A DNA stretch of 64,000 nt, from the IMG/VR virus record IMGVR_UViG_3300012931_000759, positions 276,393 through 340,392 of that record. One strand, given 5' to 3'. Of this stretch, positions 30,232-57,727 are shown piece after piece (position 1 is the first letter of the stretch; each line of letters begins with the position of its first letter). Below the pieces are notes generated by a model. The model ran no database searches. It was given only the letters and a program-made list of their open reading frames with translations, and had not been told where the DNA came from. The position numbers and the translations under genes are program-made.

Positions 30232-30519
30232 ATGCCGATATATGACTACATTTGCGAGGAATGCGGCCACGTCTTCGAGGAGTTTGCGCGTATCACGGAT
30301 CCTCCGATTAATAAATGTCCGGCCTGCGGCCTAACGGGACGCGTATGTCGCCTAATCTCGAGCGGCACAGTTGGCACAGTAGAGATGAACGGTCGGGAGT
30401 ACTTCAATCGTGTCTTAGAACCGGAGGCCAAGCGGATCGCCGAGAAGATTAAGCACGGGGATGATGCCGCAATCGCTGATGTTTTTGGCGAGGGCCCTCC
30501 TGCAAAAAAAGTCGGTTGA
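30232..30519 (+). CDS. FmdB-family zinc ribbon protein
   Basis: MPIYDYICEECG..FE...CPACG...RLIS. Confidence 0.85.
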   Translation: MPIYDYICEECGHVFEEFARITDPPINKCPACGLTGRVCRLISSGTVGTVEMNGREYFNRVLEPEAKRIAEKIKHGDDAAIADVFGEGPPAKKVG

Positions 30520-30544
30520 ATTCCGGCTGCCCTGTGCGTATAAT
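30516..30544 (+). promoter_or_regulatory. Sigma70-type promoter upstream of prkA
   Basis: TTGAAT(30516-30521)-17 nt-TATAAT(30539-30544). Confidence 0.6.
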
Positions 30545-30614
30545 CTCTTTAAACAGGGGAAGGATTGCGTCCCGCTCCGGCCAAAGGCCGGGAAAAACCG
30601 CGAAAGGATGGAGC

Positions 30615-33600
30615 ATGGAAGTGATCAACACCGGCAAAAAGGGCAAGAAGACCAAGGATCAGGAAGAGACGGCGGAGAACGGGGCGCTCGACCTTGTTGC
30701 CCTCATTGAGCAATGTGCGGCCGAAGAGGATCTTGAGCCATGGGAGGGCACGCTTCGCGATTATCTCCCGATGGTACAGGATGATTGTACACTGGCGGAC
30801 ACGGCCCACGCAAGGCTGTGGCGCATGATTGAGACAGTCGGCATCAAGTTCGACGACAAGGATGAGCGGAAAGAGCATCCCGAGTACAGCTTTTTCACCA
30901 ACGAGTTGTTCGGCATCAATGACACGCTGGCCAGCGTCATGGAATATCTCAGGGCTGCCGCAGCTGGATCCGACGTCGCCCGGCGAATCCTGCTCCTATA
31001 CGGGCCCACGAGTTCCGGTAAATCGCAGTTCGCAATCCTCCTTAAGGAGGGTCTGGAGAAGTTCTCGCGCACCAAGGCCGGGCGCATGTTTGCCCTCAAA
31101 GATTGCCCGATGCACGAGAACCCCTTGAACGCGGTGCCCAAGGCTGCGAGGGAGCAATTGAAGGCTAAGTATGGCCTCAATATTGAAGGTGACTTGTGTC
31201 CGCGCTGTGCCTACAGGCTCAAGACCGAGTTCAACGGCGACTTCATGGCTCTGCCGGTCGAGCGCGTGCTCCTGTCCGAGGCCAACCGAGTGGGTATCGG
31301 CACGTTCCAGCCGGCCGATCCCAAGTCGCAGAACCAGTCCGAGCTGACGGGCTCCGTCAACTTCGCCAAGCTGGCCGAGCTGGGCTCGGAGTCGCACCCG
31401 CTGGCTTTCGACTTCAACGGCGAGCTGAACAAGGCCAACCGCGGCATGATGGAGTTCATCGAGCTCCTGAAGGTGGACCGCAAGTTCAGGCACATCCTCC
31501 TGACGCTGGCGCAGGAGAAGCGCATCAAGGCACAGAATTTTCCGCTCATTTTCGCGGACCTAGTAGTAATCAGCCATAGCGTGTCTGGCGATATGCCTGT
31601 TCCCTATAGAGAGAATGGGTTGGTTCGATTTACCACAATGAGGCAACTGTGTGATGCCAACAACACCAACATCGAGGTTCTTGCTGCCGATGCCAATGGC
31701 AAGCCCGCATGGACGAAAGTGAAAGGATTCTATCGTCACCAGTTCTCTGGCAAAATGGTGAAGACCGTACAGGTTGATGGTGTTGTCAACACTACTTGGC
31801 ATCATTCTTTGATTGGCAAGGCGGACAATGCGCCTTTTCTGCCCGAAACGCTTCAAGATGTCCTGGCATTCAGGAATGTTCCTGAACAAACCGAACTTGG
31901 GACATTCGATGTTCCGGTTCCCGATTCGTTGTCCTATTTACCCGTTAATACCCCAGGTATCTTGTCCACGGATTGCTGTGTTCCCGAGCAATCCTTTGCT
32001 CGTGTTAAACCAACTGGCAACAAGAAAAGTGATGGAGAATACGGCAAATATTGGATCAAAACTCGCTACGATTCTTGTTCCGAGGAAGCGAAAGACATTG
32101 TTGCTCTTCTGTGTTGGTATGCTACAGAGGGTCATGTCTCGAATGAGCATGCGATCATTTCCCAAGCCAACCTGGAAACTCTATTTTCCCTGAAGAAGAG
32201 AGCGGAGAGGGTTTCTTCAGCCATAGGGTCTGTGTTTGATCGATCGGATGAGGAGGATCACACTAGCCGCCTTCACCTTTCGGCAAGGGTGTGGCGGGAA
32301 ATTCTTGAGCACAATTGCGGAAGATATAGCGAAAACAAGCGTTTGCCAGATTTTGTGTTCAATTTGCCTCGTGAGTTGCGTGAATTCGCTTTACGAGAAC
32401 TCATAAAGGGAGATGGTCAGACTATGCCATCGTTCGCATCCTGCGAGGAATATGCCAAAAAGTACTTTGCCTTCAAAACGACAAGCATTATTCTGGCAGC
32501 CCAATTCTGCTATTTGGCAAGTTCGCTTGGGTACGATTTTGGCGTACATCATGGATATACGAAAAAGGGAAAGGATTTCTTTGGCATCAATTATCGGGAA
32601 CGAACGAAGCCCATACTAAGGAAAAACAGGATCGAGACCGTTGAGGTGTCCGACAGCGAAGTATTCGATATCGAATGCGTGGACAATCATTCTTTTGTGG
32701 CTGGCGTTGGCAACCTTGTTTGCCACAATACGAATGAGACCGAGTACCTCAAGTTCCTCGCCCAGAAGGAGGAGGAAGCGCTCCACGACCGCCTGTGGGT
32801 CATCAAGTTCCCCTACAACCTGCGCCTCGAGGACGAGATCAAGATCTACGAGAAGCTCATTTCCAGGGCGGCCGGGTTCCAAGGTATCCACATCGCGCCA
32901 CACACCCTGCGCGTGGCGGCGATGTTCGCCATCCTGAGCAGGCTGGAGGAGTCCAAGGACCAGAAGTTCACCCTGCTGACCAAGATGCGCCTGTACAACG
33001 GCGAGAAGGTCGACGGGGCCGGCAAGGAGGACGAGAAGAGGCTGCGCGAGGCTGCCGAGCGCGAGGGCATGGACGGCATCAGCCCCCGCTACATCGTGAA
33101 CCGCATCTCGGCCTGCTTCACCAAGCACGGTCGGACCTACATCACCCCGATGGACATCGTCCGCAGCATCAAGGAGGGGTTCTCCACCAACGCCAAGCTG
33201 TCGAAAGAGGACATCTCGCGGTTCGAGAACATTATCACGACGGTGATGGAGGAGTACAACAAGATCGCAACAAACGAGGTTCAGAAGGCTTTCTTCCTGA
33301 ATTTCGAGCACGAGATCAAGGATCTGCTCAATAACTACATCGACAACGTTGGTGCCTATCTGGACGATGACAAGATCCAAAACCACTGGGGCGAAATGGA
33401 GGAGCCGAACCACCGCCTCATGAGGAGTGTCGAGGAGAAAATTGGCATCACCGACGGCGGCAAGGATGCTTTCCGCCAAGAGGTGTACCGCAAGATGATC
33501 AAGAGCAAGAGCGAGACGGGCGACTACGACTACCAGAACCATCCGCGCCTGAAGGAGGCGCTACAGAAGCAGTTGTTCGAGGAGCGCAGCGACATCATCA

Positions 33601-33752
33601 GGCTGACGGTGTCCGTGCGGAATCCTGATGCCGATGCGCTCAAGCGGCTGAACGAGGTCATCAAGACCTTGAGCGAAAAATGCGGTTACACTCCGGAGAG
33701 CGCCAATGATTTGCTGCGTTATGTCAGCAGCATATTGGCGAAAAACAGCTAG
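30615..33752 (+). CDS. prkA: PrkA/YeaG AAA+ protein kinase, intein-containing
   Basis: LLLYGPTSSGKS, CPMHENPL, GIGTFQP.D, GELNKANRGMMEFIE, H|TNETEY, HIAPHTL, EGMDGISPRY. Confidence 0.92.
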   Translation: MEVINTGKKGKKTKDQEETAENGALDLVALIEQCAAEEDLEPWEGTLRDYLPMVQDDCTLADTAHARLWRMIETVGIKFDDKDERKEHPEYSFFTNELFGINDTLASVMEYLRAAAAGSDVARRILLLYGPTSSGKSQFAILLKEGLEKFSRTKAGRMFALKDCPMHENPLNAVPKAAREQLKAKYGLNIEGDLCPRCAYRLKTEFNGDFMALPVERVLLSEANRVGIGTFQPADPKSQNQSELTGSVNFAKLAELGSESHPLAFDFNGELNKANRGMMEFIELLKVDRKFRHILLTLAQEKRIKAQNFPLIFADLVVISHSVSGDMPVPYRENGLVRFTTMRQLCDANNTNIEVLAADANGKPAWTKVKGFYRHQFSGKMVKTVQVDGVVNTTWHHSLIGKADNAPFLPETLQDVLAFRNVPEQTELGTFDVPVPDSLSYLPVNTPGILSTDCCVPEQSFARVKPTGNKKSDGEYGKYWIKTRYDSCSEEAKDIVALLCWYATEGHVSNEHAIISQANLETLFSLKKRAERVSSAIGSVFDRSDEEDHTSRLHLSARVWREILEHNCGRYSENKRLPDFVFNLPRELREFALRELIKGDGQTMPSFASCEEYAKKYFAFKTTSIILAAQFCYLASSLGYDFGVHHGYTKKGKDFFGINYRERTKPILRKNRIETVEVSDSEVFDIECVDNHSFVAGVGNLVCHNTNETEYLKFLAQKEEEALHDRLWVIKFPYNLRLEDEIKIYEKLISRAAGFQGIHIAPHTLRVAAMFAILSRLEESKDQKFTLLTKMRLYNGEKVDGAGKEDEKRLREAAEREGMDGISPRYIVNRISACFTKHGRTYITPMDIVRSIKEGFSTNAKLSKEDISRFENIITTVMEEYNKIATNEVQKAFFLNFEHEIKDLLNNYIDNVGAYLDDDKIQNHWGEMEEPNHRLMRSVEEKIGITDGGKDAFRQEVYRKMIKSKSETGDYDYQNHPRLKEALQKQLFEERSDIIRLTVSVRNPDADALKRLNEVIKTLSEKCGYTPESANDLLRYVSSILAKNS
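31578..32729 (+). mobile_element. Intein (Ser1...His-Asn, +1 Thr) with LAGLIDADG endonuclease in prkA
   Basis: SVSGD start, TTWHHS block B, WYATEG and LIKGDG motifs, VFDIEC..NHSF...CHN end; removal restores VISH-TNETEY; lower GC. Confidence 0.9.
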
Positions 33753-36977: not shown

Positions 36978-37538
36978 ATGGCAAGGGTTTGTATCACCGG
37001 GCACCGCCCGGATCCTTTTCTGGTGTCGCATTACCAACTTGAGGCTGTGGAACGTCTCGCTGGCAATGTTACCTGCGCGCTCAAGCGCGAGTACGGCGAC
37101 GAGCTGATGTTCAACTTAGGTGGAGCTGTGGGCGCTGACCAATGGATGGGCGCTGCCGCCATTGAACATGGCGTGAAGTACAGCCTATTCCTGCCGTTCT
37201 TGCCACAGATCCAGGCCCGTTACTGGGACGAGCAGCAGCGCGACGAACTTGACCGCCAGATGAAGGGCGCCGCTAAAATCGTGATCGTAGATCCATCGGG
37301 CCAATACGACGTTGCCAAATACTACGAGCGCGACCGCCTGATGGTGGACGAGGCCGATTTTGTCGTGGCGTTCTGGGTCGGCCGTCGACGCGGAGGCACC
37401 TTTGAGACGATGAAGTATGCTCTATCCAAGTCGAAATTTGTACTCAACGCCATGGATCACCTGCGTCCTGTGTTCAAGCAGGACTTGGAGAGCGGATGGA
37501 CTCCGCCACACTTGAGAGGGGAAACCGAAGATGAATAA
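36978..37538 (+). CDS. YspA/DUF1273-like SLOG-fold protein
   Basis: CITGHRP, GGAVGADQW, LPF..Q...W, RDRLMVD, GGTFET..YA. Confidence 0.8.
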   Translation: MARVCITGHRPDPFLVSHYQLEAVERLAGNVTCALKREYGDELMFNLGGAVGADQWMGAAAIEHGVKYSLFLPFLPQIQARYWDEQQRDELDRQMKGAAKIVIVDPSGQYDVAKYYERDRLMVDEADFVVAFWVGRRRGGTFETMKYALSKSKFVLNAMDHLRPVFKQDLESGWTPPHLRGETEDE

Positions 37539-38175
37539 TGGGGTCAAGACCCGTCGCTACCTTGTGAACAACGAGGAAATCCTTGTGCTGATTGAATCCT
37601 GGCGGAATGCTAACCAGCACGAGAAAACCAAGCTTGCGAACCAGGTAGTTTCTCGTCTCGCCTTCCTTGTTCACTCCAAGATTAGGCTCCACAAGGGGTC
37701 CCCACTGTACGACGATCTCCTCCAGGAGGGGCGGCTAGGTATCATGAAGGCCCTTCAGGATTTCGAGCCTGAACGTGGCCGTAATTTTTTCATGTTCGCC
37801 ACTTGGCATATTCAAACTAGGGTGCGCCGACTACTTCTGCGCGAGGTGCGTCGTTGCGAGTCCCCGGCTGGAGATATGCTGCTGGTGGCCAAAAGTGTCT
37901 CCGAGACCCGCGAGCACCTCCTAGCGCAGGAGACCGGCACTGCCCTTGAGAGTCGGGAGAGCTGCGGTGCTATTATGAAAGTGCTGAGTTTCCTGTCGGA
38001 CAGCGACCGCAAAGTGCTAGTTATGCGTTTCGGCTTCGACGGCGAAGAGCCTCGTACATTCCAGCAAATCGGGAACGAACTTGGAATTTCCAAGCAGCGC
38101 GCACAGCAAATCGAAGCCGGTGTTTTGCGCCGTCTGCGCAGGAATAATGAGCTTATGGACCTAATTGGTGGGTAG
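37531..38175 (+). CDS. Sigma70-family RNA polymerase sigma factor (regions 2 and 4)
   Basis: DDLLQEGRLGIMKALQDFEPERG..F..FATWHI; MRFGFDGEEPRTFQQIGNELGISKQRAQQIE. Confidence 0.9.
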   Translation: MNNGVKTRRYLVNNEEILVLIESWRNANQHEKTKLANQVVSRLAFLVHSKIRLHKGSPLYDDLLQEGRLGIMKALQDFEPERGRNFFMFATWHIQTRVRRLLLREVRRCESPAGDMLLVAKSVSETREHLLAQETGTALESRESCGAIMKVLSFLSDSDRKVLVMRFGFDGEEPRTFQQIGNELGISKQRAQQIEAGVLRRLRRNNELMDLIGG

Positions 38176-38184
38176 GAGAGTGGT

Positions 38185-41100
38185 ATGCCGATGATCTACT
38201 TGGTGGATGACATCGAATCCACTATCAAGAGAATGTTATCTGACGAGGAGCTGAGGGGTCTTGGTCTCAACAAGATCAAAGTGCGCCGAACCCTATCCTC
38301 GTTTAGGGGTGACGAGATTGCCGCTTCCGTTTTTCTCAAGAAATACGCCCTGCGTGATGCTGATGACGAGGTAGCCGAGCTGACCTTGGAGGAGGCCAAG
38401 GATCGGTGGGCGGTTGCCATCGCCAAGGGGGAGGAGCTGTTCTCTGGCGAGCGCAAGGAGGCTCCGTACTTCCGTGAACTGTATGAGCATTTCCTACCGG
38501 CTGGCCGCCAGATGTTTGCTTTGGGTAACAGCCAGATGAGAAACGTAACGTTCACGAATTGTCTGTCTGGCAGCACATTTGTGCCAACGGACGCAGGTTT
38601 ACGGAAATTGGATGCGCTGTCCAAGACAAAGGTGCGCCTGAACGGCAAAAGCTATATGGCCAAGGTTTGGCGCACGGGATCCAAGCTCGTTAGACGGTTG
38701 GATACTGTTGAAGGGTATTTTGCCCTGCCGACTGGCGACCATCGGTTCCAATTAGTCGATGGATCTTGGCGTTCTGTGGACAAACTCCAGCCCGGTGACC
38801 GCATTGTGTTGGGACATGATAGTAGGCCTTTTGGTCCTTCTAATGAACATGAAGAATTGAGAGGTTTTGCGGCTGGCCTATTTGTTGGAGTTGGTACATT
38901 TGCCGGTGAAGGTTTCCAGGTCGCAAATGTGCGTCTGTTCGGGAAGAATTCAAGATTCTTGGTGGAAAAGATTGCCAGTTTGTATGGTGGCAGTCCTCTC
39001 TCTCATGCTGAACATATATCCTATAACAGTACAGCATGGGCGCGCGATATGTTCGAAAGTACAGGCATCCAGCACGGCAATAAAACGATCACTGATCGTC
39101 TCATGTCCCAATCATGGTCGTTCCTGCGTGGTTTTTTGCGAGGACTGTTTGATGCCAATGGATGTGTTATTGATAGCCAAAAAAACCACCAGCGGCAGAT
39201 CGTGCTGGTCCAATCGGATCGCGACATGCTATGTCGGGTACAGATCCTCTTGTTGGCGTTTGGTATTCGTTCGGTCATATACAAGGGAGAATTTCCCAAG
39301 GGTGTTTTTCAGTGTCGACAAGGATGGTCTTTACACATTAGTAGACGTTCGTTCGAGACATTTGCCGAGTTCATAGGATTTGCGCATCCAAGCAAGGCGG
39401 CAAAGATGCGCACTGCGTTGAACCGTGCGCCTTTTAAGCCGGACATTTGGTATGCTCGTGTCAAAAGCGTAACGAATTTTCAACGCATGGATGTGTACGA
39501 TATGAGTGTTTTTGGTATACATGCGTTTCCGGCAAACGGTTTGGTTGCCCATAACTGCTATGTTACCCAGATCGAGGATGACAGTATTGAGGGCATCTAT
39601 GGCGCGGCCCAGAAACTGGCCAAAACATACTCGTACGGCGGCGGCATCGGACTGTGCGTGGGTGAATTGCGCCCTGCGGGCGCGCGTGTGTCGAACAGTG
39701 CGCGCCAGTCGACCGGCTCCGTCAGCTTCATGGAGCTGTTCTCGCTGACGACGGGCCTGATTGGCCAAGCGGGGCGCCGTGGCGCCCTAATGATTACCAT
39801 GCCAGTATCCCATCCAGACGCAGAAGAGTTCATCGAGGTCAAACACGGGAACACTGACAAGGTTAAGTACGCGAACATTAGTCTGAAACTGACCGACGAG
39901 TTCATGCAGGCCGTCGTCGAGGACAGGATGTTCCGGCAGACCTACACCACGAAGCATGAGACGGTGTGGCGCGAAGTGCGCGCCCGTGACCTATGGCAGA
40001 AAATCATCCAGAGCGCCCGTGACTCGGCAGAGCCCGGCCTGATGTTCTGGGATCGCATGGTGACCATGTCGCCCTCGGAAATTTACCCGAGATTACAAGT
40101 CCATAGTACTAATCCTTGTGTGACGGGAGATACTTTAGTTGCGACGCCTTCTGGCTGGAAAAGGGCCGATTTATTCCAAAAAGGCGATCATATTTCTACT
40201 GTGTGTGGTTTCGGTTTGGTCGAAAGAGTAGAAACACATCATAATGTACCGGTCTACAAAGTAGAATTTTCAGACGGAACGATATTGAAAGTAACTGCTG
40301 CCCATCAGTTCCATGTGGCAAAAAAGGATACAAAAACAGAAAAATATCCAAGGAAATATACTCCTACCAGGCTAGATCAAATGGAAGTTGGGGATTTTGT
40401 AAGGGCTTCTGGTTTCGAATGTCCAGATCTGCCAGAAGGCCAATTAAAAGATTTTTGTGACGCTTTTTTGGCTGGTGTGTTGTTGGGAGACGGATGTTAC
40501 ACTCCAAAAATGACAGCTAGTAAAGTGGTAAAGATTGCATCTGATATCAGAGACAATAAATGGAACGAGCTACTAAAGAGCAAATTTGGAGAACGTGGTG
40601 TGATATTATCTTGCTACGGGGCGACAGATGGGTCATGTTCTTGTAGTCTTACCTCGCAGAATGGCGACTTGGTGAGCTTGGTGGACGAATTTGGTCTGGT
40701 TCACACATATTCTTATCATAAGCGTATTCCTGATCATTTGTGTTTTGGAAACAAAGAACAAATGCGAGGTGTTCTAGATGGTCTTTTCTCCACTGATGGA
40801 AATGTGAATCTTAGCGGAGACTCTCCACAGATAAGGTTGAAATCCACATCACGGTTTATGTTGGCCCAAGTTAAGAGAATGCTTCTGATGTTTGGCATAT
40901 TCTCGTCATTGGGGAATGTCGGTAAAACTTCAATAATACTTGGGCGAAAAGTAAAATCACGAGACCGATACGAATTGGTTGTGAGCGGGCAAAGTGTCGA
41001 TTTTTTCATCAGACGTATAGGGATCTCTCATCCAGCAAAGAAGGCGTTATGCCAAGATTTGCTTTTGAATTGGGCTTTGACTGGTAACACTTGGAGAGTA

Positions 41101-42591
41101 AAACTGAAATCGGTTGAGTTCATGGGATGCGAAACGGTCTATGATATCTATGAACCATCCACCGATACATGGATTACGGATGGAATTGTTTCGCGCGGTT
41201 GTGGAGAGCAGATCCTGGAGAAAGGCGGCGCCTGCGTGCTGGGCTCGCTGTTGCTCCACACCTTCGTGGTCGACCCGTTCACGCCACAGGCGCGATTTGA
41301 CTTCGACTGCTTCAAGCAGATGACCAGGCGAGCCGTCAGGCACCTGGATAACGTGGTCGAGCTGAACTTTGGTCGGCATGCCCTCGAAGAGCAGGAGGAG
41401 GCGGCCCAGCTCGGACGCCGAATTGGCCTTGGAGTGACTGGCCTCGCCGATACACTTGCGGCCCTTGGCATCAAGTACGACTCTGAAGAGGCACTTAAGG
41501 CGGTCGACCAGGTTATGTCGGCCAAAAAAGACGCCGAATACCGTGCTTCAATCGACCTGGCTATGGTACGCGGGCCTTTCAGGATGTTTGATCCCAAGGC
41601 ACACTATGAGCAGGGTTTCTGCGCCACGTTGCCGGAGGAGATCAAGGCGTTGGGACGCGAGCGTGGCCAGAGGAACGTTGCCATCTCGACCGTCGCTCCG
41701 GCCGGTAGTCTGAGTGTGATAGCCCAATGCTCAAGCGGTATCGAGCCCGTTTTCGCGCTTCGCTACAAACGATATGTCGAACTGGGCTCGGAACGAAAGG
41801 AGTTCTCCATCCGCCACCAAGGTTTGTCGCGCATGGCTGCAGTTCTGGGTAGCGAGACGGCACCGTGGTGCTGGGTCACGGCCCATAGTATCGACCACCG
41901 ATTCAGGGTGGCTATGCAGGGCGTCATCCAGAGGCATACTGATGCCTCGATCTCGAGTACCATCAACCTACCTAAGGATGCCATGGCCGAGACCGTCGGC
42001 GAAATCTACATGGACGCCTGGAAGGCGGGACTGAAGGGAATTACGGTGTACCGTGAGGGCGCGCGAGAGGGTATACTTGTAACAGAGGAGTTTGCCCGGC
42101 AGGCTGGATCCCCGATGGACACCATTATCTACGAGGCGAGAGCGGAGGCGGGGGACAAGTTCTATATTCCGATCTCCTACACTGGAGGTGATGTAAGGAA
42201 GCCTTACCAGGTGTTCCTGATCAACTACAAAACCTCTGAGAATGACCGGTTTGCCAAAATGGGCAACGATTTGGTGCGTATGCTGCGCGAGAAAGGCGTA
42301 GAGGACGCTGACCCGAAGCGTTTCCAGAAGTACCTGGATCGGAGCACGACACAGCTGGGGAAGATTACAAGATTCCTGTCCCTCTCCATGAAAACGGGCC
42401 ATTTTGAGGAGGCAGTCGAGATTCTTGGCGAGCATGGCACGGTTGGAACGCTAGCTGCCGAGCTATACAAGATTCTTCGCATAAGTCTCGCAAACGCGAA
42501 GGTTTTGTGCCCCAACTGCGGTAGCTCGAACGTCAGGATGGAGGAGGGATGTCGGCATTGCCTGGATTGTAGTTGGTCGGGTTGCGGATAG
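38185..42591 (+). CDS. nrdJ: Class II (adenosylcobalamin-dependent) ribonucleotide reductase with two inteins
   Basis: FLPAGR, N|CYV, GGGIG, GRRGALM, AEPG, TNP|CGEQ, RRIGLGVTG, VAPAGS, GLKGITVYREG, C-terminal CPNC...EEGC..C..C. Confidence 0.93.
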   Translation: MPMIYLVDDIESTIKRMLSDEELRGLGLNKIKVRRTLSSFRGDEIAASVFLKKYALRDADDEVAELTLEEAKDRWAVAIAKGEELFSGERKEAPYFRELYEHFLPAGRQMFALGNSQMRNVTFTNCLSGSTFVPTDAGLRKLDALSKTKVRLNGKSYMAKVWRTGSKLVRRLDTVEGYFALPTGDHRFQLVDGSWRSVDKLQPGDRIVLGHDSRPFGPSNEHEELRGFAAGLFVGVGTFAGEGFQVANVRLFGKNSRFLVEKIASLYGGSPLSHAEHISYNSTAWARDMFESTGIQHGNKTITDRLMSQSWSFLRGFLRGLFDANGCVIDSQKNHQRQIVLVQSDRDMLCRVQILLLAFGIRSVIYKGEFPKGVFQCRQGWSLHISRRSFETFAEFIGFAHPSKAAKMRTALNRAPFKPDIWYARVKSVTNFQRMDVYDMSVFGIHAFPANGLVAHNCYVTQIEDDSIEGIYGAAQKLAKTYSYGGGIGLCVGELRPAGARVSNSARQSTGSVSFMELFSLTTGLIGQAGRRGALMITMPVSHPDAEEFIEVKHGNTDKVKYANISLKLTDEFMQAVVEDRMFRQTYTTKHETVWREVRARDLWQKIIQSARDSAEPGLMFWDRMVTMSPSEIYPRLQVHSTNPCVTGDTLVATPSGWKRADLFQKGDHISTVCGFGLVERVETHHNVPVYKVEFSDGTILKVTAAHQFHVAKKDTKTEKYPRKYTPTRLDQMEVGDFVRASGFECPDLPEGQLKDFCDAFLAGVLLGDGCYTPKMTASKVVKIASDIRDNKWNELLKSKFGERGVILSCYGATDGSCSCSLTSQNGDLVSLVDEFGLVHTYSYHKRIPDHLCFGNKEQMRGVLDGLFSTDGNVNLSGDSPQIRLKSTSRFMLAQVKRMLLMFGIFSSLGNVGKTSIILGRKVKSRDRYELVVSGQSVDFFIRRIGISHPAKKALCQDLLLNWALTGNTWRVKLKSVEFMGCETVYDIYEPSTDTWITDGIVSRGCGEQILEKGGACVLGSLLLHTFVVDPFTPQARFDFDCFKQMTRRAVRHLDNVVELNFGRHALEEQEEAAQLGRRIGLGVTGLADTLAALGIKYDSEEALKAVDQVMSAKKDAEYRASIDLAMVRGPFRMFDPKAHYEQGFCATLPEEIKALGRERGQRNVAISTVAPAGSLSVIAQCSSGIEPVFALRYKRYVELGSERKEFSIRHQGLSRMAAVLGSETAPWCWVTAHSIDHRFRVAMQGVIQRHTDASISSTINLPKDAMAETVGEIYMDAWKAGLKGITVYREGAREGILVTEEFARQAGSPMDTIIYEARAEAGDKFYIPISYTGGDVRKPYQVFLINYKTSENDRFAKMGNDLVRMLREKGVEDADPKRFQKYLDRSTTQLGKITRFLSLSMKTGHFEEAVEILGEHGTVGTLAAELYKILRISLANAKVLCPNCGSSNVRMEEGCRHCLDCSWSGCG
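38560..39555 (+). mobile_element. Intein 1 in nrdJ (Cys1...His-Asn, +1 Cys) with degenerate LAGLIDADG
   Basis: CLSGST, TGDHRF, GLFVGVG and GLFDANG, VYDMSV..HAFPANGLVAHN. Confidence 0.92.
40117..41199 (+). mobile_element. Intein 2 in nrdJ with non-canonical C-terminus (...IVSRG|C) and intact-looking LAGLIDADG
   Basis: CVTGDTLV, VTAAHQF, GVLLGDG, GLFSTDG, VYDIYEPSTDTWITDGIVSRG; removal restores STNP-CGEQ; AT-rich. Confidence 0.88.
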
Positions 42592-42602
42592 CAGGTTCTC
42601 TC

Positions 42603-42869
42603 ATGAATATTCCCGTGATCGAACTCTTGGCACACATCTGTCTCAACAGGGAGGAAGCGGACTCCGAGCTTCCGCGCGCCTTCCGGAAAGTGGTGAAGCA
42701 GGGCCTCCGCAGGATGTTTGAGCCTATCCTTGGTTCGCAGGTCGGATATGCCATCGAGCATCTAATTGTGGCCGCAAAGGCCTTTGATCTGGTCAGAGAG
42801 GACGGCGAATATCTGATTGCCGTCATCAAACCGAAAGAGAGCCACATATGTCCGACGGAGCGAAACTGA
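42603..42869 (+). CDS. Hypothetical protein
   Basis: ORF fills the gap after nrdJ. Confidence 0.5.
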   Translation: MNIPVIELLAHICLNREEADSELPRAFRKVVKQGLRRMFEPILGSQVGYAIEHLIVAAKAFDLVREDGEYLIAVIKPKESHICPTERN

Positions 42870-42870
42870 A

Positions 42871-43239
42871 ATGACCACCATCCTGGCGGATGTCGGCGAC
42901 GAGCGGCAGGCCATCGACGAGGAGCGGCAGGCCTGGTTGCGGCGCGTGCTGGTTGCCCTCGGAGCCGACGAGGCGACCATTTCCGAGAACACGCTGGAGG
43001 CCAAGCGCCACGTCTCCAGCCTTGGCCTGGATGTAGAGGGGCATCCTGACGGATCCATCGATATTGCTCGCCTGGAGATCTCAGTTATTGCCAGCGAGGA
43101 CAAAGAGGTTCCGATCGAGACGGGACGCCAGCTGGTGGCCCAATGGCTGCCGCCGAAGCTGCTGCGCGTCAAGGACAGGCCGAGGGATTATTACCGGATC
43201 ACACTGTGTGAATGGGCTCTGCCTTTCCAGATGAAATAG
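42871..43239 (+). CDS. Hypothetical protein
   Basis: Abuts the previous stop; typical codon usage. Confidence 0.6.
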   Translation: MTTILADVGDERQAIDEERQAWLRRVLVALGADEATISENTLEAKRHVSSLGLDVEGHPDGSIDIARLEISVIASEDKEVPIETGRQLVAQWLPPKLLRVKDRPRDYYRITLCEWALPFQMK

Positions 43240-43249
43240 GAGGAGAAAG

Positions 43250-43708
43250 GTGTCTTTTTACGTCAAGAACAAGAAAGGTGATTTTGTTCCCGTAAAGGTT
43301 GAGCAGGTCCTGTCAAAAGATTGGGCTGGCAAGTTGATCATGGTCCGGATCGGCAGCGACGAGCACCCAGCGGATGAGCAGGAGCTGATCGATGTGAATG
43401 ACAGCCTCGACACGGCCACCGTGATCGAAATGCTGCCGGATACCAGCTTCCTCATCACTTCATTCGCCATTCAGTTCGACGTCGTCGGCAGTCTGGAGGA
43501 GCTGAGAAAACAGTACGTGGCCGTGCGGGTTACTGGTGATGACGATCTGTCCAAACTTGGGGGTCTCCAAAAGCACGCTAGGGAGAAACTGAAGGGAAAG
43601 GCCAAGAAAGTCGCCGTACTTCCGACGCCCTTGACCGTGGATGACTATCATGAAGTGATGAAAATCAAAGAACGATGCGATTTGCGCAGATCGCGCCGGG
43701 GGAGATGA
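43250..43708 (+). CDS. Hypothetical protein
   Basis: AGGAGGAG RBS before a GTG start. Confidence 0.65.
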   Translation: MSFYVKNKKGDFVPVKVEQVLSKDWAGKLIMVRIGSDEHPADEQELIDVNDSLDTATVIEMLPDTSFLITSFAIQFDVVGSLEELRKQYVAVRVTGDDDLSKLGGLQKHAREKLKGKAKKVAVLPTPLTVDDYHEVMKIKERCDLRRSRRGR

Positions 43709-45110: not shown

Positions 45111-45187
45111 TTGTATGGGTTGTGCGGAAGTCTTCTAGGCCTCCGCGTAACCCGTCGCCATATGGCACGATTGGAATCGGAGACGCG

Positions 45188-46456
45188 ATGGCTACCCCCC
45201 CTTTCCTACGGAATGCGTATCCAGCCGATCTTGCAGCAGGCGTGGACACGTCCACATTGGTTTCTGCCGATGTGCTAGACGTAGACCAGGATCTTGTTCC
45301 CTCGAGCATCCTCGTTTACATCGATGGCGCGTTGGCATATGATGGTGCCTCCGGATTTGTCGCGCCGTTTTCCGGGACGGTATCCACAACAACCGTGGAT
45401 GGGTACGATGGCTACCATCTCTCTGTGGCCCGGTCAGTATCCTATTCCAATTCTTCGTGGATCATGGTGCGCGTGGTTGCCAGGGACACGGATGATCTTG
45501 TCCTGGATGAAATCTGGCAATTCTACACAGTTACGGTTCTTGCGGCCTTGCGACAAGGTCCGTACGAGATCTCGTTGGATGCGGAGTTCAGCGGTCCGAT
45601 GATGTTGTCGACCCTACAGGACGCATCGTACTTCTCCCTTGACAGGGCTTATGTACGGGCCTTGGATCCCTTGCCGCCCGGTAGCGCCGCACCCATGGGC
45701 GTGCGGCTTTGGGTGGAGGGTTTTCGTGGCGAACAGCCTTTTACGCTCACCATATCTCCTCTGGTTCGGGATGTTGCGGGCAATGTTCTTCCACCAAGTG
45801 GTCGCGTAGCCACCATTCTTCCGTTTCAGTCCTCGGCTTTCCTCTCCAACACGGATGGGTTTGTGCGTTCTTGGCACGAAAGCCGCCTTATCCTGAAGGA
45901 CGGCCTCCGGGCCTATCTTGCCGACACCCGTGGGATGGATGTGTTCGATATCGAGCACGGCCTCGGCAGGTCGGTGAAGTGGGCGCAGATATTGGACTCG
46001 TACGGGACAAGGGCGGCCTGTATCCTCGGGACGGCCAACTATGCTTTCGAAGATATGGAGCCCCCCTTCCTGGCCAACCGTTCTCCTACTCCAGGGGCCA
46101 CGGGCGTTCCACTAGGGACGAACATTCTGCTTTCAGTGGCCGATCTTGTGACGGCGGTCGAGGTGACGGCTGTGGCTGTCTATGTGAACGGACGGTTGGC
46201 ATTCGGTGGTGCGAGTGACGGTGGATGGGCGAACGGCTACGGCGGGCAGGTTTCAGTCGGCCACCAGATCATCGACATTCGGCTGTATCCTCCTGCGGGA
46301 GGGATTGTGGTTGGCACAAATACAGTGTCGGTCCTGGCCGCCGACCTTGTTGGGAATCTGCTGGATACCAGTTATACATTCACAGTGGGCGCCCCTCCGC
46401 CGACGGCTGGTGGATTCGGCACTGGCGGCTTTGGCACTGCGCCGTTCGGTGAGTAG
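45188..46456 (+). CDS. Putative virion protein with Ig-like repeats; paralog of 54505..56520
   Basis: PPFL.N..P repeats, DGYDGY, C-terminal GGFGTGGFGTAPFG. Confidence 0.6.
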   Translation: MATPPFLRNAYPADLAAGVDTSTLVSADVLDVDQDLVPSSILVYIDGALAYDGASGFVAPFSGTVSTTTVDGYDGYHLSVARSVSYSNSSWIMVRVVARDTDDLVLDEIWQFYTVTVLAALRQGPYEISLDAEFSGPMMLSTLQDASYFSLDRAYVRALDPLPPGSAAPMGVRLWVEGFRGEQPFTLTISPLVRDVAGNVLPPSGRVATILPFQSSAFLSNTDGFVRSWHESRLILKDGLRAYLADTRGMDVFDIEHGLGRSVKWAQILDSYGTRAACILGTANYAFEDMEPPFLANRSPTPGATGVPLGTNILLSVADLVTAVEVTAVAVYVNGRLAFGGASDGGWANGYGGQVSVGHQIIDIRLYPPAGGIVVGTNTVSVLAADLVGNLLDTSYTFTVGAPPPTAGGFGTGGFGTAPFGE

Positions 46457-46468
46457 GTAGCAAAAATC

Positions 46469-46485
46469 TGTCAATAATTCCGCAT
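46469..46485 (+). promoter_or_regulatory. Recurring motif, copy 4 (TGTCAATA-ATTCC-GCAT)
   Basis: Intergenic; CAAAAATCTGTCAATA matches the copy at 1031 in 15 of 16 nt. Confidence 0.55.
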
Positions 46486-46541
46486 CAGATGGGGATATAC
46501 GGTTCCGGATCGACCGGAAACGATTCCGTCAGGAGGCATAG

Positions 46542-48734
46542 ATGAGGGATAAGGGTTCCATGGGATTGACCCAAAGTTTCCGCCTGATCCGGTTCAAGGA
46601 CGTAGAGGGACTAGATGCGGAGGATCTTCTGGAGTATACTCCGGACGGCATTCAAGTCCGTTCAGAGATGCTCGGAAAAGTGGTCGAGGATGCTGTCCAT
46701 CGTAACAAATGGACCAGGCGGGGGCTGACCAGGATCCTTTATGAGTGTTTCAAAGGCCACAGCGGTAGTACCAGTCTATATCCGGCCGAGGTGACGTACG
46801 GGCAGCAGAATAACTGCTTCGCCGCGCTTTTTGTGGCGGCAGACGACGCTGGCACGGCGGCTAGCCGCTCCATATCTGGAAACGCCTTGGACACGATCAC
46901 GAAATCCAGCAACCAGATTTACCTAGTCAATGGAAATTTTACGGGTGCCGATGTAGGCAAACTGATCCAGATCACTGGTGGCACCCGGGAAGGCAATAAG
47001 GGTTTTCGGCTCATCACCCAGGTGCTGGGCGCAACCACTGTTGTGGTTACGGGATACGGCTCCTCCGGAGGTTTTGCCTCCAACGCCACGGAGAATTTTG
47101 GTGGCGTCGCCCTGTGGACCATTGTTCGTCCGGCGGATGCGCGTGTTGAATGGAATGAGTCGGACGGTCAGTTCAATACCAAGATTCCGCAGGGAAACGC
47201 TTCCGGCGCGGCTCTTTCTGAACGTGGAAGTAGGGCTTGTCTTATTTCTGATACGGCCGCAAGTACCTTTAGGCGAATGTCGATCGGATATGTTACAACT
47301 AATCCTTTCCGTGAAATTGAGTATGTTTTCTATGCCTTGGGTTCTTCTATCAGTAGGAACGTCACAGGCTCGCCCCTTGATAGTATTTTTGCTCAAACCA
47401 ATACAATTACATTGACCAATGCGAATTTTTCGCCGAGCGATGTTGGTAAGATTTTAAAAATTTCTGGCGCATCAAACTCTATAAATAATGGGCAGAGGCG
47501 TATTACTGTCTATGTAGATAATACACATGTTAAGACAGATGGACAGTATGCTATAGATGCCTATGAGAATTTTATGAGCGCGCAAGCGCAAGATGGTTTG
47601 TATTCTGCCTCGGCAGAAACCGGATATAAGGGTCTTGATTATTTGCCACTAAAGACCATAGGTCTTTCCGAGGGCATAGCCTGTGGATCAAGTGAGACCT
47701 CGAATCGCACTGGAATTCACTCTGTGCTCGGAATACAGCCAACATTACAAGGTGTGTGTGACCGCATCTATGTTCATGAGGGTACAGGCCTCCATAAATA
47801 TACTGGAGCTGAGACTCTTGGAACATTTGGTGATGGATACGTTCAGGACTCTTCTGTAGGTAATTTCACTGGTGATAAAATCTGTGATGGCTATGTACAG
47901 GGTGAAGGTTTAGATGGTTATGTAAACCTTGGAAGTAGGTGGATGTCTACGGCCGGTAGTAACCATATAATTGGACGTGTTTGGTCAACTACGACTGCGA
48001 AAAAACTCACAGGTATCCGCATAATTTTTCCGCTAGGTGAGAATAAGAATAATTGTCCGGATAGTTTCTTTATTCAGTATTTAGATGCCTCAACGGTTGG
48101 AGATATTCCTGGTAATTTACAGCCAGCAAATAATAGTTGCTGGACTACTATAGGAAGTCTTTATAGTAACCAGGGTGACACCATATTTTCCAATAGAGAG
48201 TATGGTGTAGAGTATACGTTTACCATTCCTGGCGGGGCCGATGCATATGGCATTAGATTATATAATCTGAATGCCTATTCCAATACTGCGGCTGTAGAAG
48301 TTGCGGAATTATATGCTTTTACAGCCGTACCTACTATTTTGATGACAGCGGATACGACGGACCAACTGCGCCTTGCGATTAAGGCTTCACCGTTGTCTGC
48401 TGATTTTCGGAACTTCTATCTTGGGTCATTATCTACAACTAGTGTCGCAACTTTGGTGAACACATTAAATGCACAACTTCGCGGCTATCAGATTGAGGCT
48501 GTGCGGTCCAATTTTGGATATTTATGGATTCGCGGTACTGTACAAGGCAATAATAGCTATTTGACATTAGATTCCATAGATAATGGATCTTCTGCAAACA
48601 CATTATTAGGTATGCCAGTATCAACTATCCGTCGGGCCAAGCAGGGTGCGACGCAGGTTATCATGAAATTGCCTTGTGACGCATTAGCTATCATCTACAG
48701 ATTTGCTATTTCGGGCGATTTACCCATGCCCTGA
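46542..48734 (+). CDS. Putative virion (tail/fiber) protein
   Basis: G/S/T/N-rich; internal repeat NF(T/S)..DVGK...I(T/S)G; three DGY; discoidin-like beta segment; AGGAGG RBS. Confidence 0.55.
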   Translation: MRDKGSMGLTQSFRLIRFKDVEGLDAEDLLEYTPDGIQVRSEMLGKVVEDAVHRNKWTRRGLTRILYECFKGHSGSTSLYPAEVTYGQQNNCFAALFVAADDAGTAASRSISGNALDTITKSSNQIYLVNGNFTGADVGKLIQITGGTREGNKGFRLITQVLGATTVVVTGYGSSGGFASNATENFGGVALWTIVRPADARVEWNESDGQFNTKIPQGNASGAALSERGSRACLISDTAASTFRRMSIGYVTTNPFREIEYVFYALGSSISRNVTGSPLDSIFAQTNTITLTNANFSPSDVGKILKISGASNSINNGQRRITVYVDNTHVKTDGQYAIDAYENFMSAQAQDGLYSASAETGYKGLDYLPLKTIGLSEGIACGSSETSNRTGIHSVLGIQPTLQGVCDRIYVHEGTGLHKYTGAETLGTFGDGYVQDSSVGNFTGDKICDGYVQGEGLDGYVNLGSRWMSTAGSNHIIGRVWSTTTAKKLTGIRIIFPLGENKNNCPDSFFIQYLDASTVGDIPGNLQPANNSCWTTIGSLYSNQGDTIFSNREYGVEYTFTIPGGADAYGIRLYNLNAYSNTAAVEVAELYAFTAVPTILMTADTTDQLRLAIKASPLSADFRNFYLGSLSTTSVATLVNTLNAQLRGYQIEAVRSNFGYLWIRGTVQGNNSYLTLDSIDNGSSANTLLGMPVSTIRRAKQGATQVIMKLPCDALAIIYRFAISGDLPMP

Positions 48735-48743
48735 GGTGAAATT

Positions 48744-49409
48744 ATGATAACCGGACATTTCGACCTTGTGCTTAAAAATGCCAAGGGACTCGTAGACGAG
48801 GATTTCCATGAAGCACATCAATATGGGCGACTACCTTATATGTTGGATAGTTTAAATACAGAACTTGAAGCCCATACCGACAATCTAGTAATGGACGGTG
48901 TTGTGCTATATCTGGGATATAATTTATTCCAGGTAACTGATACTGCAGGATCACAAATAAGTGTTTTGGCTACTAGTACTTCAGCATGGTTTAGTTGTAT
49001 TTGTTTGCTGACAACTGATAGTGAGCCGAATTACACATCTGAATGGAATAGAACCTCATTTACTTTTCAGACTCCAAGTAATGTTCCGGAATCAGCTAAC
49101 ACCTCGAGTGGCGGTAAGCGTTTTAAAGAAGATGCCTCAGAGGTACCGGATGTAAGGTCGGATCAAGGCGGCAGGGAGGCGATTTTTTACCGTGACCGGT
49201 GGTTATACCTTCCATCGCAGGGAATATCATCCAACATCCGAAGTATACAGGCACATATGGCAAACAATCAGGATGGTGGCAATAACTATTATTTTGGACG
49301 TTCTGCTAGGATTCGCATTAAAGATGCCGGCGGAAATCCTATCATCATCAGTAAGACTTCAAGCCAAGTATTGCTTGTTGAGTATCGACTGTCGTTTGTA
49401 AGTATCTGA
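48744..49409 (+). CDS. Hypothetical structural-type protein
   Basis: GAGG RBS; S/T/N-rich; cluster context. Confidence 0.55.
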   Translation: MITGHFDLVLKNAKGLVDEDFHEAHQYGRLPYMLDSLNTELEAHTDNLVMDGVVLYLGYNLFQVTDTAGSQISVLATSTSAWFSCICLLTTDSEPNYTSEWNRTSFTFQTPSNVPESANTSSGGKRFKEDASEVPDVRSDQGGREAIFYRDRWLYLPSQGISSNIRSIQAHMANNQDGGNNYYFGRSARIRIKDAGGNPIIISKTSSQVLLVEYRLSFVSI

Positions 49410-49454
49410 TCACGTAGATTTGTACGGAATCGTTTTGACGCGAAGGTACCCTAG

Positions 49455-51596: not shown

Positions 51597-51603
51597 GGCA
51601 ACA

Positions 51604-54501: not shown

Positions 54502-54504
54502 TAT

Positions 54505-56520: not shown

Positions 56521-56530
56521 GGGACCAATA

Positions 56531-57727
56531 ATGCCGATCACGATTCAGAACCAGAGCCCAGCCAGCGGCGCCTCGGGCGTTTCCACGACCGTCGATGTCC
56601 AGATCGACGTCGTGAGGGCGGCGCCCGTATTACTTTTGGCCGAGATCCAGATATACATCGAGGGCGATTGGGCTTTCGATGGCGGGAGCGCGACGCCTTT
56701 TCATGGTCAATACGCCGGGCCCGGCTCATTAGTGTCCCCTGTGGCGGACGGATACCGCATCATCCTGGATCGTCTTACCCCGTATCGCGAGGAGTTCGTC
56801 AACGTACAGGTGAGGCAGACCGGACAGGGTCCAGTCGGCGGCTGGTCATTTCGCGTGGGCAACAGCCCGGTTAGCGATTTCTACTTCTCCGACGGCTACG
56901 GAATCCGCAGGCTACACATGAGGCAGCTGGTGGGCGAATGGAAACCGTACGAGAACGCAAACACCGACGGCTACGCTATGCCGATCATCCTATCTGCGGC
57001 GGTCACTCCGGGCTGGCCGAGCGACAATGTGCGCACAATGACCGGGGCTCGCCCCGACGGATACCTTTTTCTCGTGTCCAGCACGGAAGATGGCGTGGCT
57101 GTCACGCAGAACGAGACGGGCGGTCTGCGAATTTATTCAGATGGCTATGACACGCTGTCTGCGCACATGACCGCGCAGGGAACTTTGTACCTGATCAACA
57201 GGACATTGAATAGGCTGGAGGTGTACTATGGAGCCGATTACAGGACACCAAACCGCCCGCCTGATTTCTTCTACGACACATCTTCCACGCCAACGCTGCT
57301 CGATGGAAATTTGTCGGCCCTCCATATTGCTGAGGGAAGGTCGACCGTTCTCGTGGGAGGGACGCGATTGTACGTCGGCTGCTCGCGATATCCCGACGGA
57401 AGCGGGGGCGGCATCACGAAGATCGAGACGTACGACGCCCAGATCGACGGCTATTCGGAAGGCCATGACGGCTACGGTCGTTCGTATACATATGGTATCG
57501 CTGGCAGCCCGACGGATTTTCCGATCCTCGGGGGCAGTGTGCCGGATGTAGTGGCGGTCGATTCCAACGAAACTGAGGGAATCCTGTTTGTTGCGACCAA
57601 CGACGGCACAGAGGTCGGCGGAGGTCTTTCGCAGATGTCGATCTCCCGAAATGTCCTGCTCCTGTTCATGACCAAGGAAACCGGCCAACTACCCTCCAAT
57701 GTGATCAAGGATATTGCAGCTCCATAA
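56531..57727 (+). CDS. Putative virion protein, DGY-rich
   Basis: NQSPA Ig-like start, propeller-like repeats (PSDNVR, LPSNVI); seven DGY. Confidence 0.55.
   Translation: MPITIQNQSPASGASGVSTTVDVQIDVVRAAPVLLLAEIQIYIEGDWAFDGGSATPFHGQYAGPGSLVSPVADGYRIILDRLTPYREEFVNVQVRQTGQGPVGGWSFRVGNSPVSDFYFSDGYGIRRLHMRQLVGEWKPYENANTDGYAMPIILSAAVTPGWPSDNVRTMTGARPDGYLFLVSSTEDGVAVTQNETGGLRIYSDGYDTLSAHMTAQGTLYLINRTLNRLEVYYGADYRTPNRPPDFFYDTSSTPTLLDGNLSALHIAEGRSTVLVGGTRLYVGCSRYPDGSGGGITKIETYDAQIDGYSEGHDGYGRSYTYGIAGSPTDFPILGGSVPDVVAVDSNETEGILFVATNDGTEVGGGLSQMSISRNVLLLFMTKETGQLPSNVIKDIAAP

Follow-up and report, generated by a model that had tools for sequence, protein, structure and literature searches.

The second intein in the ribonucleotide reductase (RNR) gene of this huge phage belongs to a large, strongly conserved family, found in bacteria, archaea and phages, that ends in glycine instead of the asparagine (or Gln/Asp) used by every described protein-splicing mechanism. 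This suggests that the intein, if it splices as we infer from sequence, most likely completes splicing by a chemistry that has not been described, and we found no paper describing one. The intein lies within a 64,000-nucleotide stretch of DNA (positions 276,393 to 340,392 of IMG/VR record IMGVR_UViG_3300012931_000759; here referred to as the window), in which a single open reading frame encodes a class II RNR of the nrdJ type. The 361-aa insert sits between Pro and the thiyl-radical Cys of this RNR and carries a LAGLIDADG endonuclease. The initial annotation, made from the sequence alone, had reported that the insert ends in Ser-Arg-Gly rather than His-Asn at this cysteine, and we found that observation to be exact.

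The Gly-terminated intein and its conservation

To define the boundaries of the insert, we aligned the flanking sequences to Thermotoga maritima NrdJ (TmNrdJ). The exteins aligned to TmNrdJ residues 134 to 321 and 322 to 639, and the flanks of intein-2 matched ...STNP321 and C322GE... without gap or overlap, placing the insert exactly before the catalytic Cys. In the translated gene, residues 645 to 1005 read TNP/CVTGDTL...ITDGIVSRG/CGEQ, so that the N-x-C-x-E finger-loop motif (TNP-CGE) is reconstituted across the insert. The intein has the features expected of a Hint splicing domain at its N terminus, within its fold and at position +1, but it lacks a C-terminal residue able to cyclize. An AF2 model of the insert had a pLDDT of 91 and a pTM of 0.90, and the top Foldseek hits were the TliVMA, PI-SceI and PI-PfuI inteins (E = 1e-20 to 1e-15), although the match to the Pfam Intein_splicing model was only 19.6 bits, below the 35.8 cutoff. 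The endonuclease (Pfam PF14528, E = 1.6e-15) has two LAGLIDADG motifs, with the catalytic acidic residues D125 and D227 conserved. The first intein of the same protein has a normal His-Asn end and serves as an internal control. The coordinates of these features are given in Table 1.

Table 1. Features of the nrdJ gene and of its two inteins (positions in the window; conservation is among Gly-type family members)
Coordinates	Strand	Feature	Observations
38185-42591	+	nrdJ-type class II RNR gene, 1468-aa precursor	Two inteins; barrel domain (Pfam PF02867, E = 3e-90); C-terminal CxxC...CxxC tail
38560-39555	+	Intein-1 (332 aa), canonical	FTN/CLSG...VAHN/CYV; inserted before the Cys equivalent to TmNrdJ C134
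40117-41199	+	Intein-2 (361 aa), Hint splicing domain plus LAGLIDADG endonuclease	Ends Ser-Arg-Gly; GC 0.42 against 0.57 in the exteins
40117-40119	+	Cys1 (block A nucleophile)	Invariant in 182/182
40231-40233	+	Glu39, acidic residue specific to the Gly type	Glu in 178/182; Tyr in the Asp type; Phe, Met, Trp or Leu in the Asn type
40288-40314	+	Block B (KVTAAHQFH; T60, H63)	T60 99.5% and H63 100% conserved
40465-40497	+	LAGLIDADG motif 1 (FLAGVLLGDGC)	Pfam PF14528, E = 1.6e-15; G120, G124 and D125 conserved
40771-40803	+	LAGLIDADG motif 2 (VLDGLFSTDGN)	G218, D221, G222, D227 and G228 conserved
41137-41172	+	Block F (VYDIYEPSTDTW): D343 (F:4), D350, T351, W352	D343, D350 and W352 invariant in 182/182
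41164-41166	+	D350 (GAT)	In place of the canonical F:13 His
41173-41199	+	Block G (ITDGIVSRG), turn D355-G356	G356 and G361 invariant; position 359 is S, Q or N
41191-41199	+	S359 R360 G361 (TCG CGC GGT)	Position 360 is Arg in 155/182, and Q, V, L, M or K in the rest
41200-41202	+	Cys+1 (TGT), first C-extein residue, RNR thiyl-radical cysteine (TmNrdJ C322)	Invariant

We next asked whether the unusual end could reflect a sequencing error or the recent decay of a His-Asn end. An independent Logan assembly of one wetland run gave an identical contig over positions 39900 to 41500 at a word depth of 9, and a second run, from another study, contained 100% of the sampled words; these comparisons rest on contigs rather than raw reads, and the runs may be the source of the window. 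The decisive evidence is conservation. All 119 homologs, at 39 to 58% identity, end in x-x-G/CGE, as do 80 species-level genome loci (out of 152 found) and 12 viral loci down to 30% identity. All 199 relatives recovered at this site end in x-x-Gly/Cys, which is far beyond chance or error. The conserved residues are encoded by all of their synonymous codons: Gly uses GGA, GGG, GGC and GGT 31, 15, 17 and 18 times, respectively, and Arg and Ser each use all six codons. These data refute error or recent decay as an explanation.

To evaluate selection on the intein, we estimated dN/dS for its separate parts. The ratio was 0.18 for Hint-N and 0.17 for Hint-C, compared to 0.30 for the endonuclease and 0.29 for the flanking extein. 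Conservation of (S/T)RG/C ends under purifying selection had been proposed beforehand as a test, and the outcome was positive, with (S/Q/N)-(R/Q)-G/C ends conserved in the family. At least eight natural mini-inteins, of 132 to 150 aa, have lost the endonuclease but keep C1, TxxH, E39, D-T-W and xxG/C, which we take to mean that only splicing can be selecting for these residues. The hosts include Patescibacteria, Chloroflexota, Acidobacteriota, DPANN archaea and phages. In this phage lineage, a syntenic low-GC relative keeps the same intein at 58% identity, while the exteins are 57 to 61% identical.

Three active-site layouts at the RNR site

The residues for Asn cyclization (block-F His, penultimate His and terminal Asn) are all absent in an otherwise intact intein and host gene. 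To determine what accompanies the terminal Gly, we compared inteins inserted at this site and found three layouts that exclude one another. A terminal Gly occurs with Asp at F:13 in 199/199 cases, and a terminal Asp occurs with an F:13 residue of L, F, I, V or T in 130/130 cases. In the canonical layout, F:13 His occurs with terminal Asn or Gln; across inteins with these ends, F:13 is H, S, N and others but never D. Only positions 39, 350 and 361, along with position 291 in the endonuclease domain, separate the Gly type from both other types. In the AF2 model, the last strands span residues 351 to 354 and 357 to 360 with a turn at 355 to 356, so residue 350 pairs with residue 361 across the final beta-hairpin, a register taken from predicted secondary structure and extrapolated one residue beyond the DSSP strands. 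In canonical inteins, His F:13 is stated to act directly on Asn G:7 (PMC4031507).

We also asked how the types are related, using a phylogeny from which the trait columns had been removed. The Gly and main Asp types together form one clade (support of 100/99), and a small Gly subgroup is sister to the Asp clade (97/90). The carboxylate has therefore switched between positions 350 and 361 during evolution.

The interpretation offered in the initial annotation was thus partly supported. It had proposed that the residues for the last step were lost together, suggesting an undescribed resolution of the branched intermediate (Arg assisted or by a trans factor) or a regulated nonsplicing state. The absence of the cyclization residues and the conserved ends do point to an undescribed way of completing splicing. 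However, these residues were not simply lost but were replaced by a different conserved set, Asp350, Gly361 and Glu39. Arg assistance is unlikely to be essential, since Arg is replaced in 15% of members, and neither a trans factor nor a permanently nonsplicing state was supported.

Candidate mechanisms for the last step

Our best reading, which we hold with only moderate confidence, is that intein-2 is a working, mobile member of a large and old clade of RNR inteins, here referred to as the Gly type, in which cleavage of the bond between the final intein residue and Cys+1 does not use cyclization of the terminal residue. In this view, steps 1 and 2 are probably canonical, with an N-to-S shift at Cys1 assisted by T60, H63 and D343 followed by transfer of the N-extein to Cys+1. 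For step 3, the invariant Gly361 would leave room for the side chain of Asp350, whose carboxylate would do the job of the terminal Asn/Asp side chain, either by attacking the Gly361 carbonyl to form a mixed anhydride that is then hydrolyzed or by acting as a general base for water. The clade-specific Glu39 possibly helps, and the freed Cys+1 amine would then complete the S-to-N shift. The conservation and purifying selection, the mutually exclusive layouts, the hairpin register in the model and the common ancestry of the Gly and Asp types are shown by our analysis, whereas it is inferred, for this and every other Gly-type intein, that splicing occurs at all and that D350 is the catalyst.

A less likely alternative is thiol-based resolution. 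The Gly361-Cys+1 amide could be opened by an N-to-S acyl shift at Cys+1, as at intein N-junctions and the Hedgehog G/C site, or by attack of the Cys1 thiol with His63 acting as a Cys-His dyad, and the exteins would then be joined as in native chemical ligation. The intein would leave either as a linear Gly-COOH form after hydrolysis or as a head-to-tail circular protein if the Cys1 amine captures the Gly thioester, with D350 acting only as a general acid/base. Gly-Cys is the sequence most prone to the N-to-S shift, and the invariance of Gly361 is therefore equally predicted by this route. In addition, Gly361, Cys+1, Cys1 and H63 are all invariant, and canonical inteins at the same site sometimes have Ser1. 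However, Cys+1 is fixed by the RNR anyway, so its invariance says nothing, and the Cys+1 thiol cannot hold both the N-extein and the intein acyl group at once, so the order of steps would have to change. This route also does not explain why an Asp appears at exactly the cross-strand position or why the sister clade carries the Asp at the terminal position instead.

It is also possible, although unlikely, that the precursor stays unspliced, permanently or until a signal arrives, leaving this RNR copy inactive or regulated and the element persisting only through homing. No cyclizable terminal residue is present, inteins at catalytic Cys residues have been proposed as redox switches, and the low GC content of intein-2 suggests recent arrival; a phage RNR is dispensable enough that this particular copy could be nonfunctional. 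A permanently nonsplicing state is nevertheless hard to reconcile with a splicing domain under stronger constraint than the endonuclease, with mini-inteins that retain all the motifs, with the invariant extein motif TNP/CGE and with the presence of the element in 152 species-level genomes, including small-genome Patescibacteria and DPANN. From established RNR structure, a 361-aa insert at the tip of the RNR finger loop is incompatible with catalysis. Conditional splicing is not excluded. Removal by a host- or phage-encoded protease or ligase in trans is very unlikely, and we found no evidence for it. The same mobile element occurs in bacteria of at least five phyla, in four DPANN archaeal lineages and in phages, all autocatalytic N-terminal residues are conserved, and no conserved neighboring gene beyond the phage replication genes was seen between the window and the sequence designated L098.

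Relation to known Hint domains and implications

The closest described systems are inteins with a C-terminal Asp (Chy RIR1 type) or Gln (CIV RNR and Pab/Mma Pol II) (Amitai, Dassa and Pietrokovski, JBC 2004, as cited in PMC4031507), which likewise have an atypical terminal residue and an RNR host. Chy RIR1 is reported to splice, and its Ala mutant reportedly still cleaves (Amitai et al. 2004). The Asp type found here, whether or not Chy RIR1 itself belongs to it, sits at the identical site (/CGE), shares T351/W352, T28 and D53 with the Gly type and, like it, lacks His at F:13 and at G:6. Asp and Gln can still cyclize on their own backbone carbonyl, whereas Gly has no side chain, and in the Gly type the Asp is on the opposite strand and Glu39 is added. 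Class 1 inteins with a LAGLIDADG homing endonuclease (PI-SceI, PI-PfuI and TliVMA) share the predicted fold, Cys1, block B TxxH, the F:4 Asp, Cys+1, two LAGLIDADG motifs and in-frame insertion at a catalytic residue, but their terminal Asn, penultimate His and F:13 His are replaced here by G, R and D, and step 3 as defined for class 1 cannot occur.

Class 2 (Mja KlbA) and class 3 (MP-Be DnaB, WCT motif) inteins set the precedent that clades of inteins have rewired one step of the pathway using compensating residues. Those classes change step 1 or 2 (no Cys1; a block-F Cys nucleophile) and keep Asn cyclization, while in the Gly type steps 1 and 2 look canonical, F:4 is Asp rather than Cys, and step 3 is changed. 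Hedgehog/Hog and bacterial intein-like (BIL) domains share the Hint fold, Hog shares the Gly/Cys scissile bond chemistry (N-to-S shift), and some BILs process without the full intein residue set. However, these domains cleave or transfer rather than splice an essential enzyme, they have no homing endonuclease, and in Hog the G/C lies at the N-terminal rather than the C-terminal junction of the Hint module.

We consider it about as likely as not that the Gly-type inteins are a fourth mechanistic class of protein splicing, in which the branched intermediate is resolved without any cyclization of the terminal residue and a carboxylate on the neighboring beta-strand (Asp350, perhaps paired with Glu39) acts instead on a Gly-Cys bond. 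The excised intein would then carry no succinimide and, depending on the route, could even be released as an anhydride-linked or head-to-tail circular protein. For annotation, rules that require a His-Asn end will miss or misbound these elements, many of which are currently named only as homing endonucleases or hypothetical proteins. The natural mini-inteins give enzymologists a defined target (D350, E39 and G361), and the family offers protein engineers a potential Asn-free, succinimide-free cleavage and ligation module. The (D350, G361) and (L350, D361) pair is a clean natural example of a side chain, inferred to be catalytic, moving between adjacent strands. Protein splicing is taught as four steps, of which the only irreversible one is cyclization of the terminal Asn (or Gln/Asp), and a widespread, selected clade with terminal Gly would show that the Hint fold has a second way to cut the C-terminal junction.

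The ribonucleotide reductase precursor and its inserts

To establish how the unusual C-terminus is placed within its host protein, we first examined the open reading frame that contains it, which encodes a class II ribonucleotide reductase (RNR) precursor (Pfam PF02867, E = 3e-90) carrying two in-frame inserts. The first of these, intein-1, is canonical (FTN/CLSG...VAHN/CYV, with a slash marking each splice junction), while the second, intein-2, reads TNP/CVTGDTL...ITDGIVSRG/CGEQ. The extein pieces align end to end with Thermotoga maritima NrdJ residues 134-321 and 322-639, with nothing missing or duplicated at the intein-2 junction, and intein-2 therefore sits exactly before the thiyl-radical cysteine. 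Intein-1 interrupts the Cys equivalent to T. maritima NrdJ C134, so that both inteins sit at catalytic or redox cysteines; the orthologous protein P0002 lacks intein-1. Shifted splice junctions for intein-2 (TNPC/V...GC/GEQ and V/SRGC) were considered and rejected, because the exteins align exactly at P321/C322 and the family is homologous to canonical inteins that use the same Cys1. An RNA-level explanation (an intron) was also rejected, as no Rfam match was found on either strand of 37500-43500 and the insert is in frame with protein-level conservation.

Coordinates of the features described in the window and in related viral sequences
Feature	Sequence	Position	Strand	Length
Free-standing ORF with homing-endonuclease and HTH matches	window	16881-18086		
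PhuZ-like tubulin ORF	window	23908-25395		
PrkA ORF	window	30516-33749		
Intein in the PrkA-like kinase	window	31578-32729		384 aa
Class II RNR precursor (nrdJ)	window	38185-42591	+	1468 aa
Intein-1	window	38560-39555		
Intein-2	window	40117-41199		361 aa
Many ORFs with no Pfam or PHROG match	window	45122-57724		
Non-RNR viral protein with a Gly-type intein at its extreme N-terminus	L092	314-4354		1346 aa (protein)
Natural Gly-type mini-intein	L093	4268-4714		
Region of the syntenic low-GC phage compared with intein-2	L098	6001-9441		

Intein-2 has Cys1, block B T60-x-x-H63, block F V-Y-D343, and two LAGLIDADG motifs. An AlphaFold model built on a 40-sequence alignment has a pLDDT of 91 and a pTM of 0.90, and its best structural matches are solved endonuclease-containing inteins (TliVMA, PI-SceI, and PI-PfuI, with E = 1e-20 to 1e-15). 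In contrast, a sequence-profile search of the PDB gave only weak matches to canonical inteins, and in a tblastn search of phage GenBank sequences the nearest hits were canonical inteins of only 23-27% identity. The three residues linked to Asn cyclization are all different: block-F position 13 is Asp350 and not His, the penultimate residue is Arg360 and not His, and the last residue is Gly361 and not Asn. The initial annotation, which had described an RNR intein ending in Ser-Arg-Gly instead of His-Asn at the catalytic cysteine, was thus correct in every detail of its observation.

The window is part of IMGVR_UViG_3300012931_000759, a 340-kb huge-phage contig from a wetland that carries PhuZ-like tubulin (which fits a jumbo phage), DnaB-type helicases, a PrkA/DUF444/SpoVR trio, PhoH, a sigma factor, and thymidylate synthase, all on one strand. 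The PrkA-like kinase contains a third intein, inserted between the AAA and C-terminal domains, which starts with Ser (ISH/SVSGDM), ends with a canonical CHN/T, and was not flagged by Pfam at E <= 0.001. The GC content of intein-2 is 0.42, compared to 0.57 for the exteins, which suggests a fairly recent arrival by homing. A syntenic low-GC phage (L098) has an orthologous nrdJ that lacks intein-1 but has the Gly-type intein at 58% identity, with exteins that are 57-61% identical. In that phage the GC content of the intein matches that of its host (about 0.33), consistent with recent transfer into the high-GC phage from a lower-GC donor.

Conservation of the Gly end

We next asked whether the Ser-Arg-Gly end could reflect a sequencing or assembly error. 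An independent assembly of a public wetland run contains an identical contig across 39900-41500, and a second run, from another study, holds all sampled words, although these comparisons rest on Logan contigs rather than raw reads and the runs may be the source of the window. The end is not an error, and the stronger argument for this is comparative. A search of 5.8 billion proteins with the intein region found 345 relatives, and all 119 listed homologues (39-58% identity, full coverage) sit at TNP/C and end x-x-Gly/CGE. A scan of one genome per species found 152 genomes encoding it, and the 80 that were retrieved come from Patescibacteria, Chloroflexota, Acidobacteriota, Nitrospinota, and Poribacteria and from DPANN archaea (Woese-, Micr-, Aenigm-, and Nanoarchaeota). 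Carriers of the element include OY969772.1, an 802-kb Aenigmatarchaeota scaffold (JAVZHQ010000001.1), and Thermoflexus hugenholtzii. Twelve IMG/VR viral contigs carry it as well, down to 30% identity. In one viral locus (L092), a Gly-type intein ending QQG/CGEF lies at the extreme N-terminus of a non-RNR protein, with an N-extein of only 9 aa and just the three residues CGE carried over; this may be an ectopic copy used as a self-cleaving leader, or a chimeric contig.

In 182 non-identical members, C1, G13, D53, G54, H63, D343, D350, W352, G356, G361, C+1, and E+3 are invariant, and the intein-2 copy in the window keeps every one of these residues. The -2 residue is Arg in 155 members and Q, V, L, M, or K in the other 27, while the -3 residue is S, Q, or N. 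Selection acts on the protein. Across 81 DNA sequences the terminal Gly uses GGA/GGG/GGC/GGT 31/15/17/18 times, and Arg and Ser each use all six codons. Pairwise dN/dS (49 pairs, dS 0.2-1.5) is 0.18 for the N-terminal splicing region and 0.17 for the C-terminal one, compared to 0.30 for the endonuclease and 0.29 for 120 flanking extein codons. At least eight natural mini-inteins of 132-150 aa, from several subclades (the viral locus L093 and the proteins P0197, P0222, P0227, P0235, P0239, P0259, and P0260), have lost the endonuclease but keep C1, TxxH, E39, D-T-W, and xxG/C. Once the endonuclease is gone, only splicing can be keeping these residues; these mini-inteins would also be convenient material for experiments.

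Active-site layouts and phylogeny at the insertion site

We next compared intein-2 with other inteins at the same site. A profile search of 1.84 billion cluster representatives returned 391 proteins at E <= 1e-30, including related inteins at this site with other ends, and we tabulated block-F position 13 against the terminal residue for all inteins at /C[GSA]E. Terminal Gly occurred with Asp at block-F position 13 in 199 of 199 cases, and terminal Asp with Leu, Phe, Ile, Val, or Thr in 130 of 130, while all inteins with terminal Asn or Gln had His, Ser, Asn, or another residue at that position, and never Asp. Only three splicing-domain positions separate the Gly type from both other types: position 39 is Glu in the Gly type, Tyr in the Asp type, and Phe, Met, Trp, or Leu in the Asn type; position 350 is Asp, Leu, and His, respectively; and position 361 is Gly, Asp, and Asn. 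Thr351 and Trp352 are shared by the Gly and Asp types only. The Asp type (S-[LF]-D/CGE, with T-L-T-W in block F; P0133 and P0267-P0384) is itself large, giving 371 hits mostly from Chloroflexota, Ktedonobacteria, and Acidobacteriota, and always has an aliphatic residue at block-F position 13. Further unusual ends occur at the same site in P0204, P0216, P0248, and P0177, namely T-G-N/C and T-G-Q/C (penultimate Gly) as well as S-N, A-N, and R-N. This one site hosts an unusually wide range of C-terminal chemistries.

In the predicted structure, the last two strands are residues 351-354 and 357-360, with a two-residue turn at D355-G356, and position 350 is therefore the cross-strand partner of 361 in the model. 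This agrees with the published view that His at block-F position 13 acts directly on the terminal Asn (PMC4031507).

To determine how the three types are related, we built a careful maximum-likelihood tree of 84 same-site inteins with positions 39, 350, and 359-361 removed. The tree splits 36 Gly-type and 18 Asp-type inteins from all Asn/Gln types plus 4 stray Asp types with support of 100/99. Within the former group, 34 Gly-type inteins form a clade (100/98), the 18 Asp-type inteins form a clade (100/99), and two Gly-type inteins of a D-E-W...QQG subgroup are sister to the Asp clade (97/90). An earlier quick tree that showed a single Gly clade was too optimistic, and monophyly of the Gly type was rejected because the careful tree needs two changes. 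These data indicate that the pair (Asp350, Gly361) and the pair (aliphatic 350, Asp361) have interconverted, in a direction and a number of events that the tree does not resolve.

A proposed chemistry for C-terminal cleavage

The N-terminal machinery is untouched, so steps 1 and 2 are probably canonical. For step 3, the data point to a carboxylate that can sit on either strand of the final hairpin: at the terminal residue in the Asp type, where the chemistry is known (Asp can cyclize; PMC4031507), and at position 350 in the Gly type, with Gly making room. We therefore propose that Asp350 cleaves the Gly361-Cys+1 bond, either as a nucleophile, through a mixed anhydride, or as a general base for water, and that the clade-specific Glu39 may help. 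Whereas the conservation, the selection on the protein, the exclusive layouts, and the branching of the tree come directly from the sequences, splicing by these inteins, the activity of the phage copy, and the catalytic role of Asp350 are inferred. The C-terminal-Asp Chy RIR1 intein reportedly splices, and its Asp-to-Ala mutant reportedly still cleaves at the C-terminus (Amitai et al., JBC 2004), which would fit a cyclization-independent route in this lineage if Chy RIR1 belongs to the Asp clade seen here; however, Carboxydothermus was not named among the top 120 hits of a search with an Asp-type intein.

The interpretation in the initial annotation, that the branched intermediate is resolved in an undescribed way (Arg assisted or by a trans factor) or that the insert is in a regulated non-splicing state, is supported only in part. 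Arg360 as the key catalyst was rejected because it is replaced in 27 of 182 members (15%), which weakens the Arg-assisted idea. A trans factor does not fit the phylogenetic spread, and a dead or purely regulatory insert does not fit the selection data. The main rival to our proposal is instead a thiol route, through an N-to-S shift at Gly-Cys+1 or attack by Cys1/His63, which also explains the invariant Gly and would predict a thioester-linked or circular intein but does not explain the Asp swap.

Full-text literature searches on Asn-less, Gly-ending, and class 4 inteins, NrdJ inteins, CPR/DPANN inteins, the motifs themselves, and Chy RIR1 returned no description of an intein ending in Gly or of Asn-independent splicing, although most subscription journals fell outside the searches and prior mention cannot be excluded. 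The 2014 mechanism review lists only Asp and Gln as substitutes for the terminal Asn (PMC4031507). Intein-2 is clearly an intein by descent and fold, but it fails the defining terminal-residue criterion in a conserved, compensated way.
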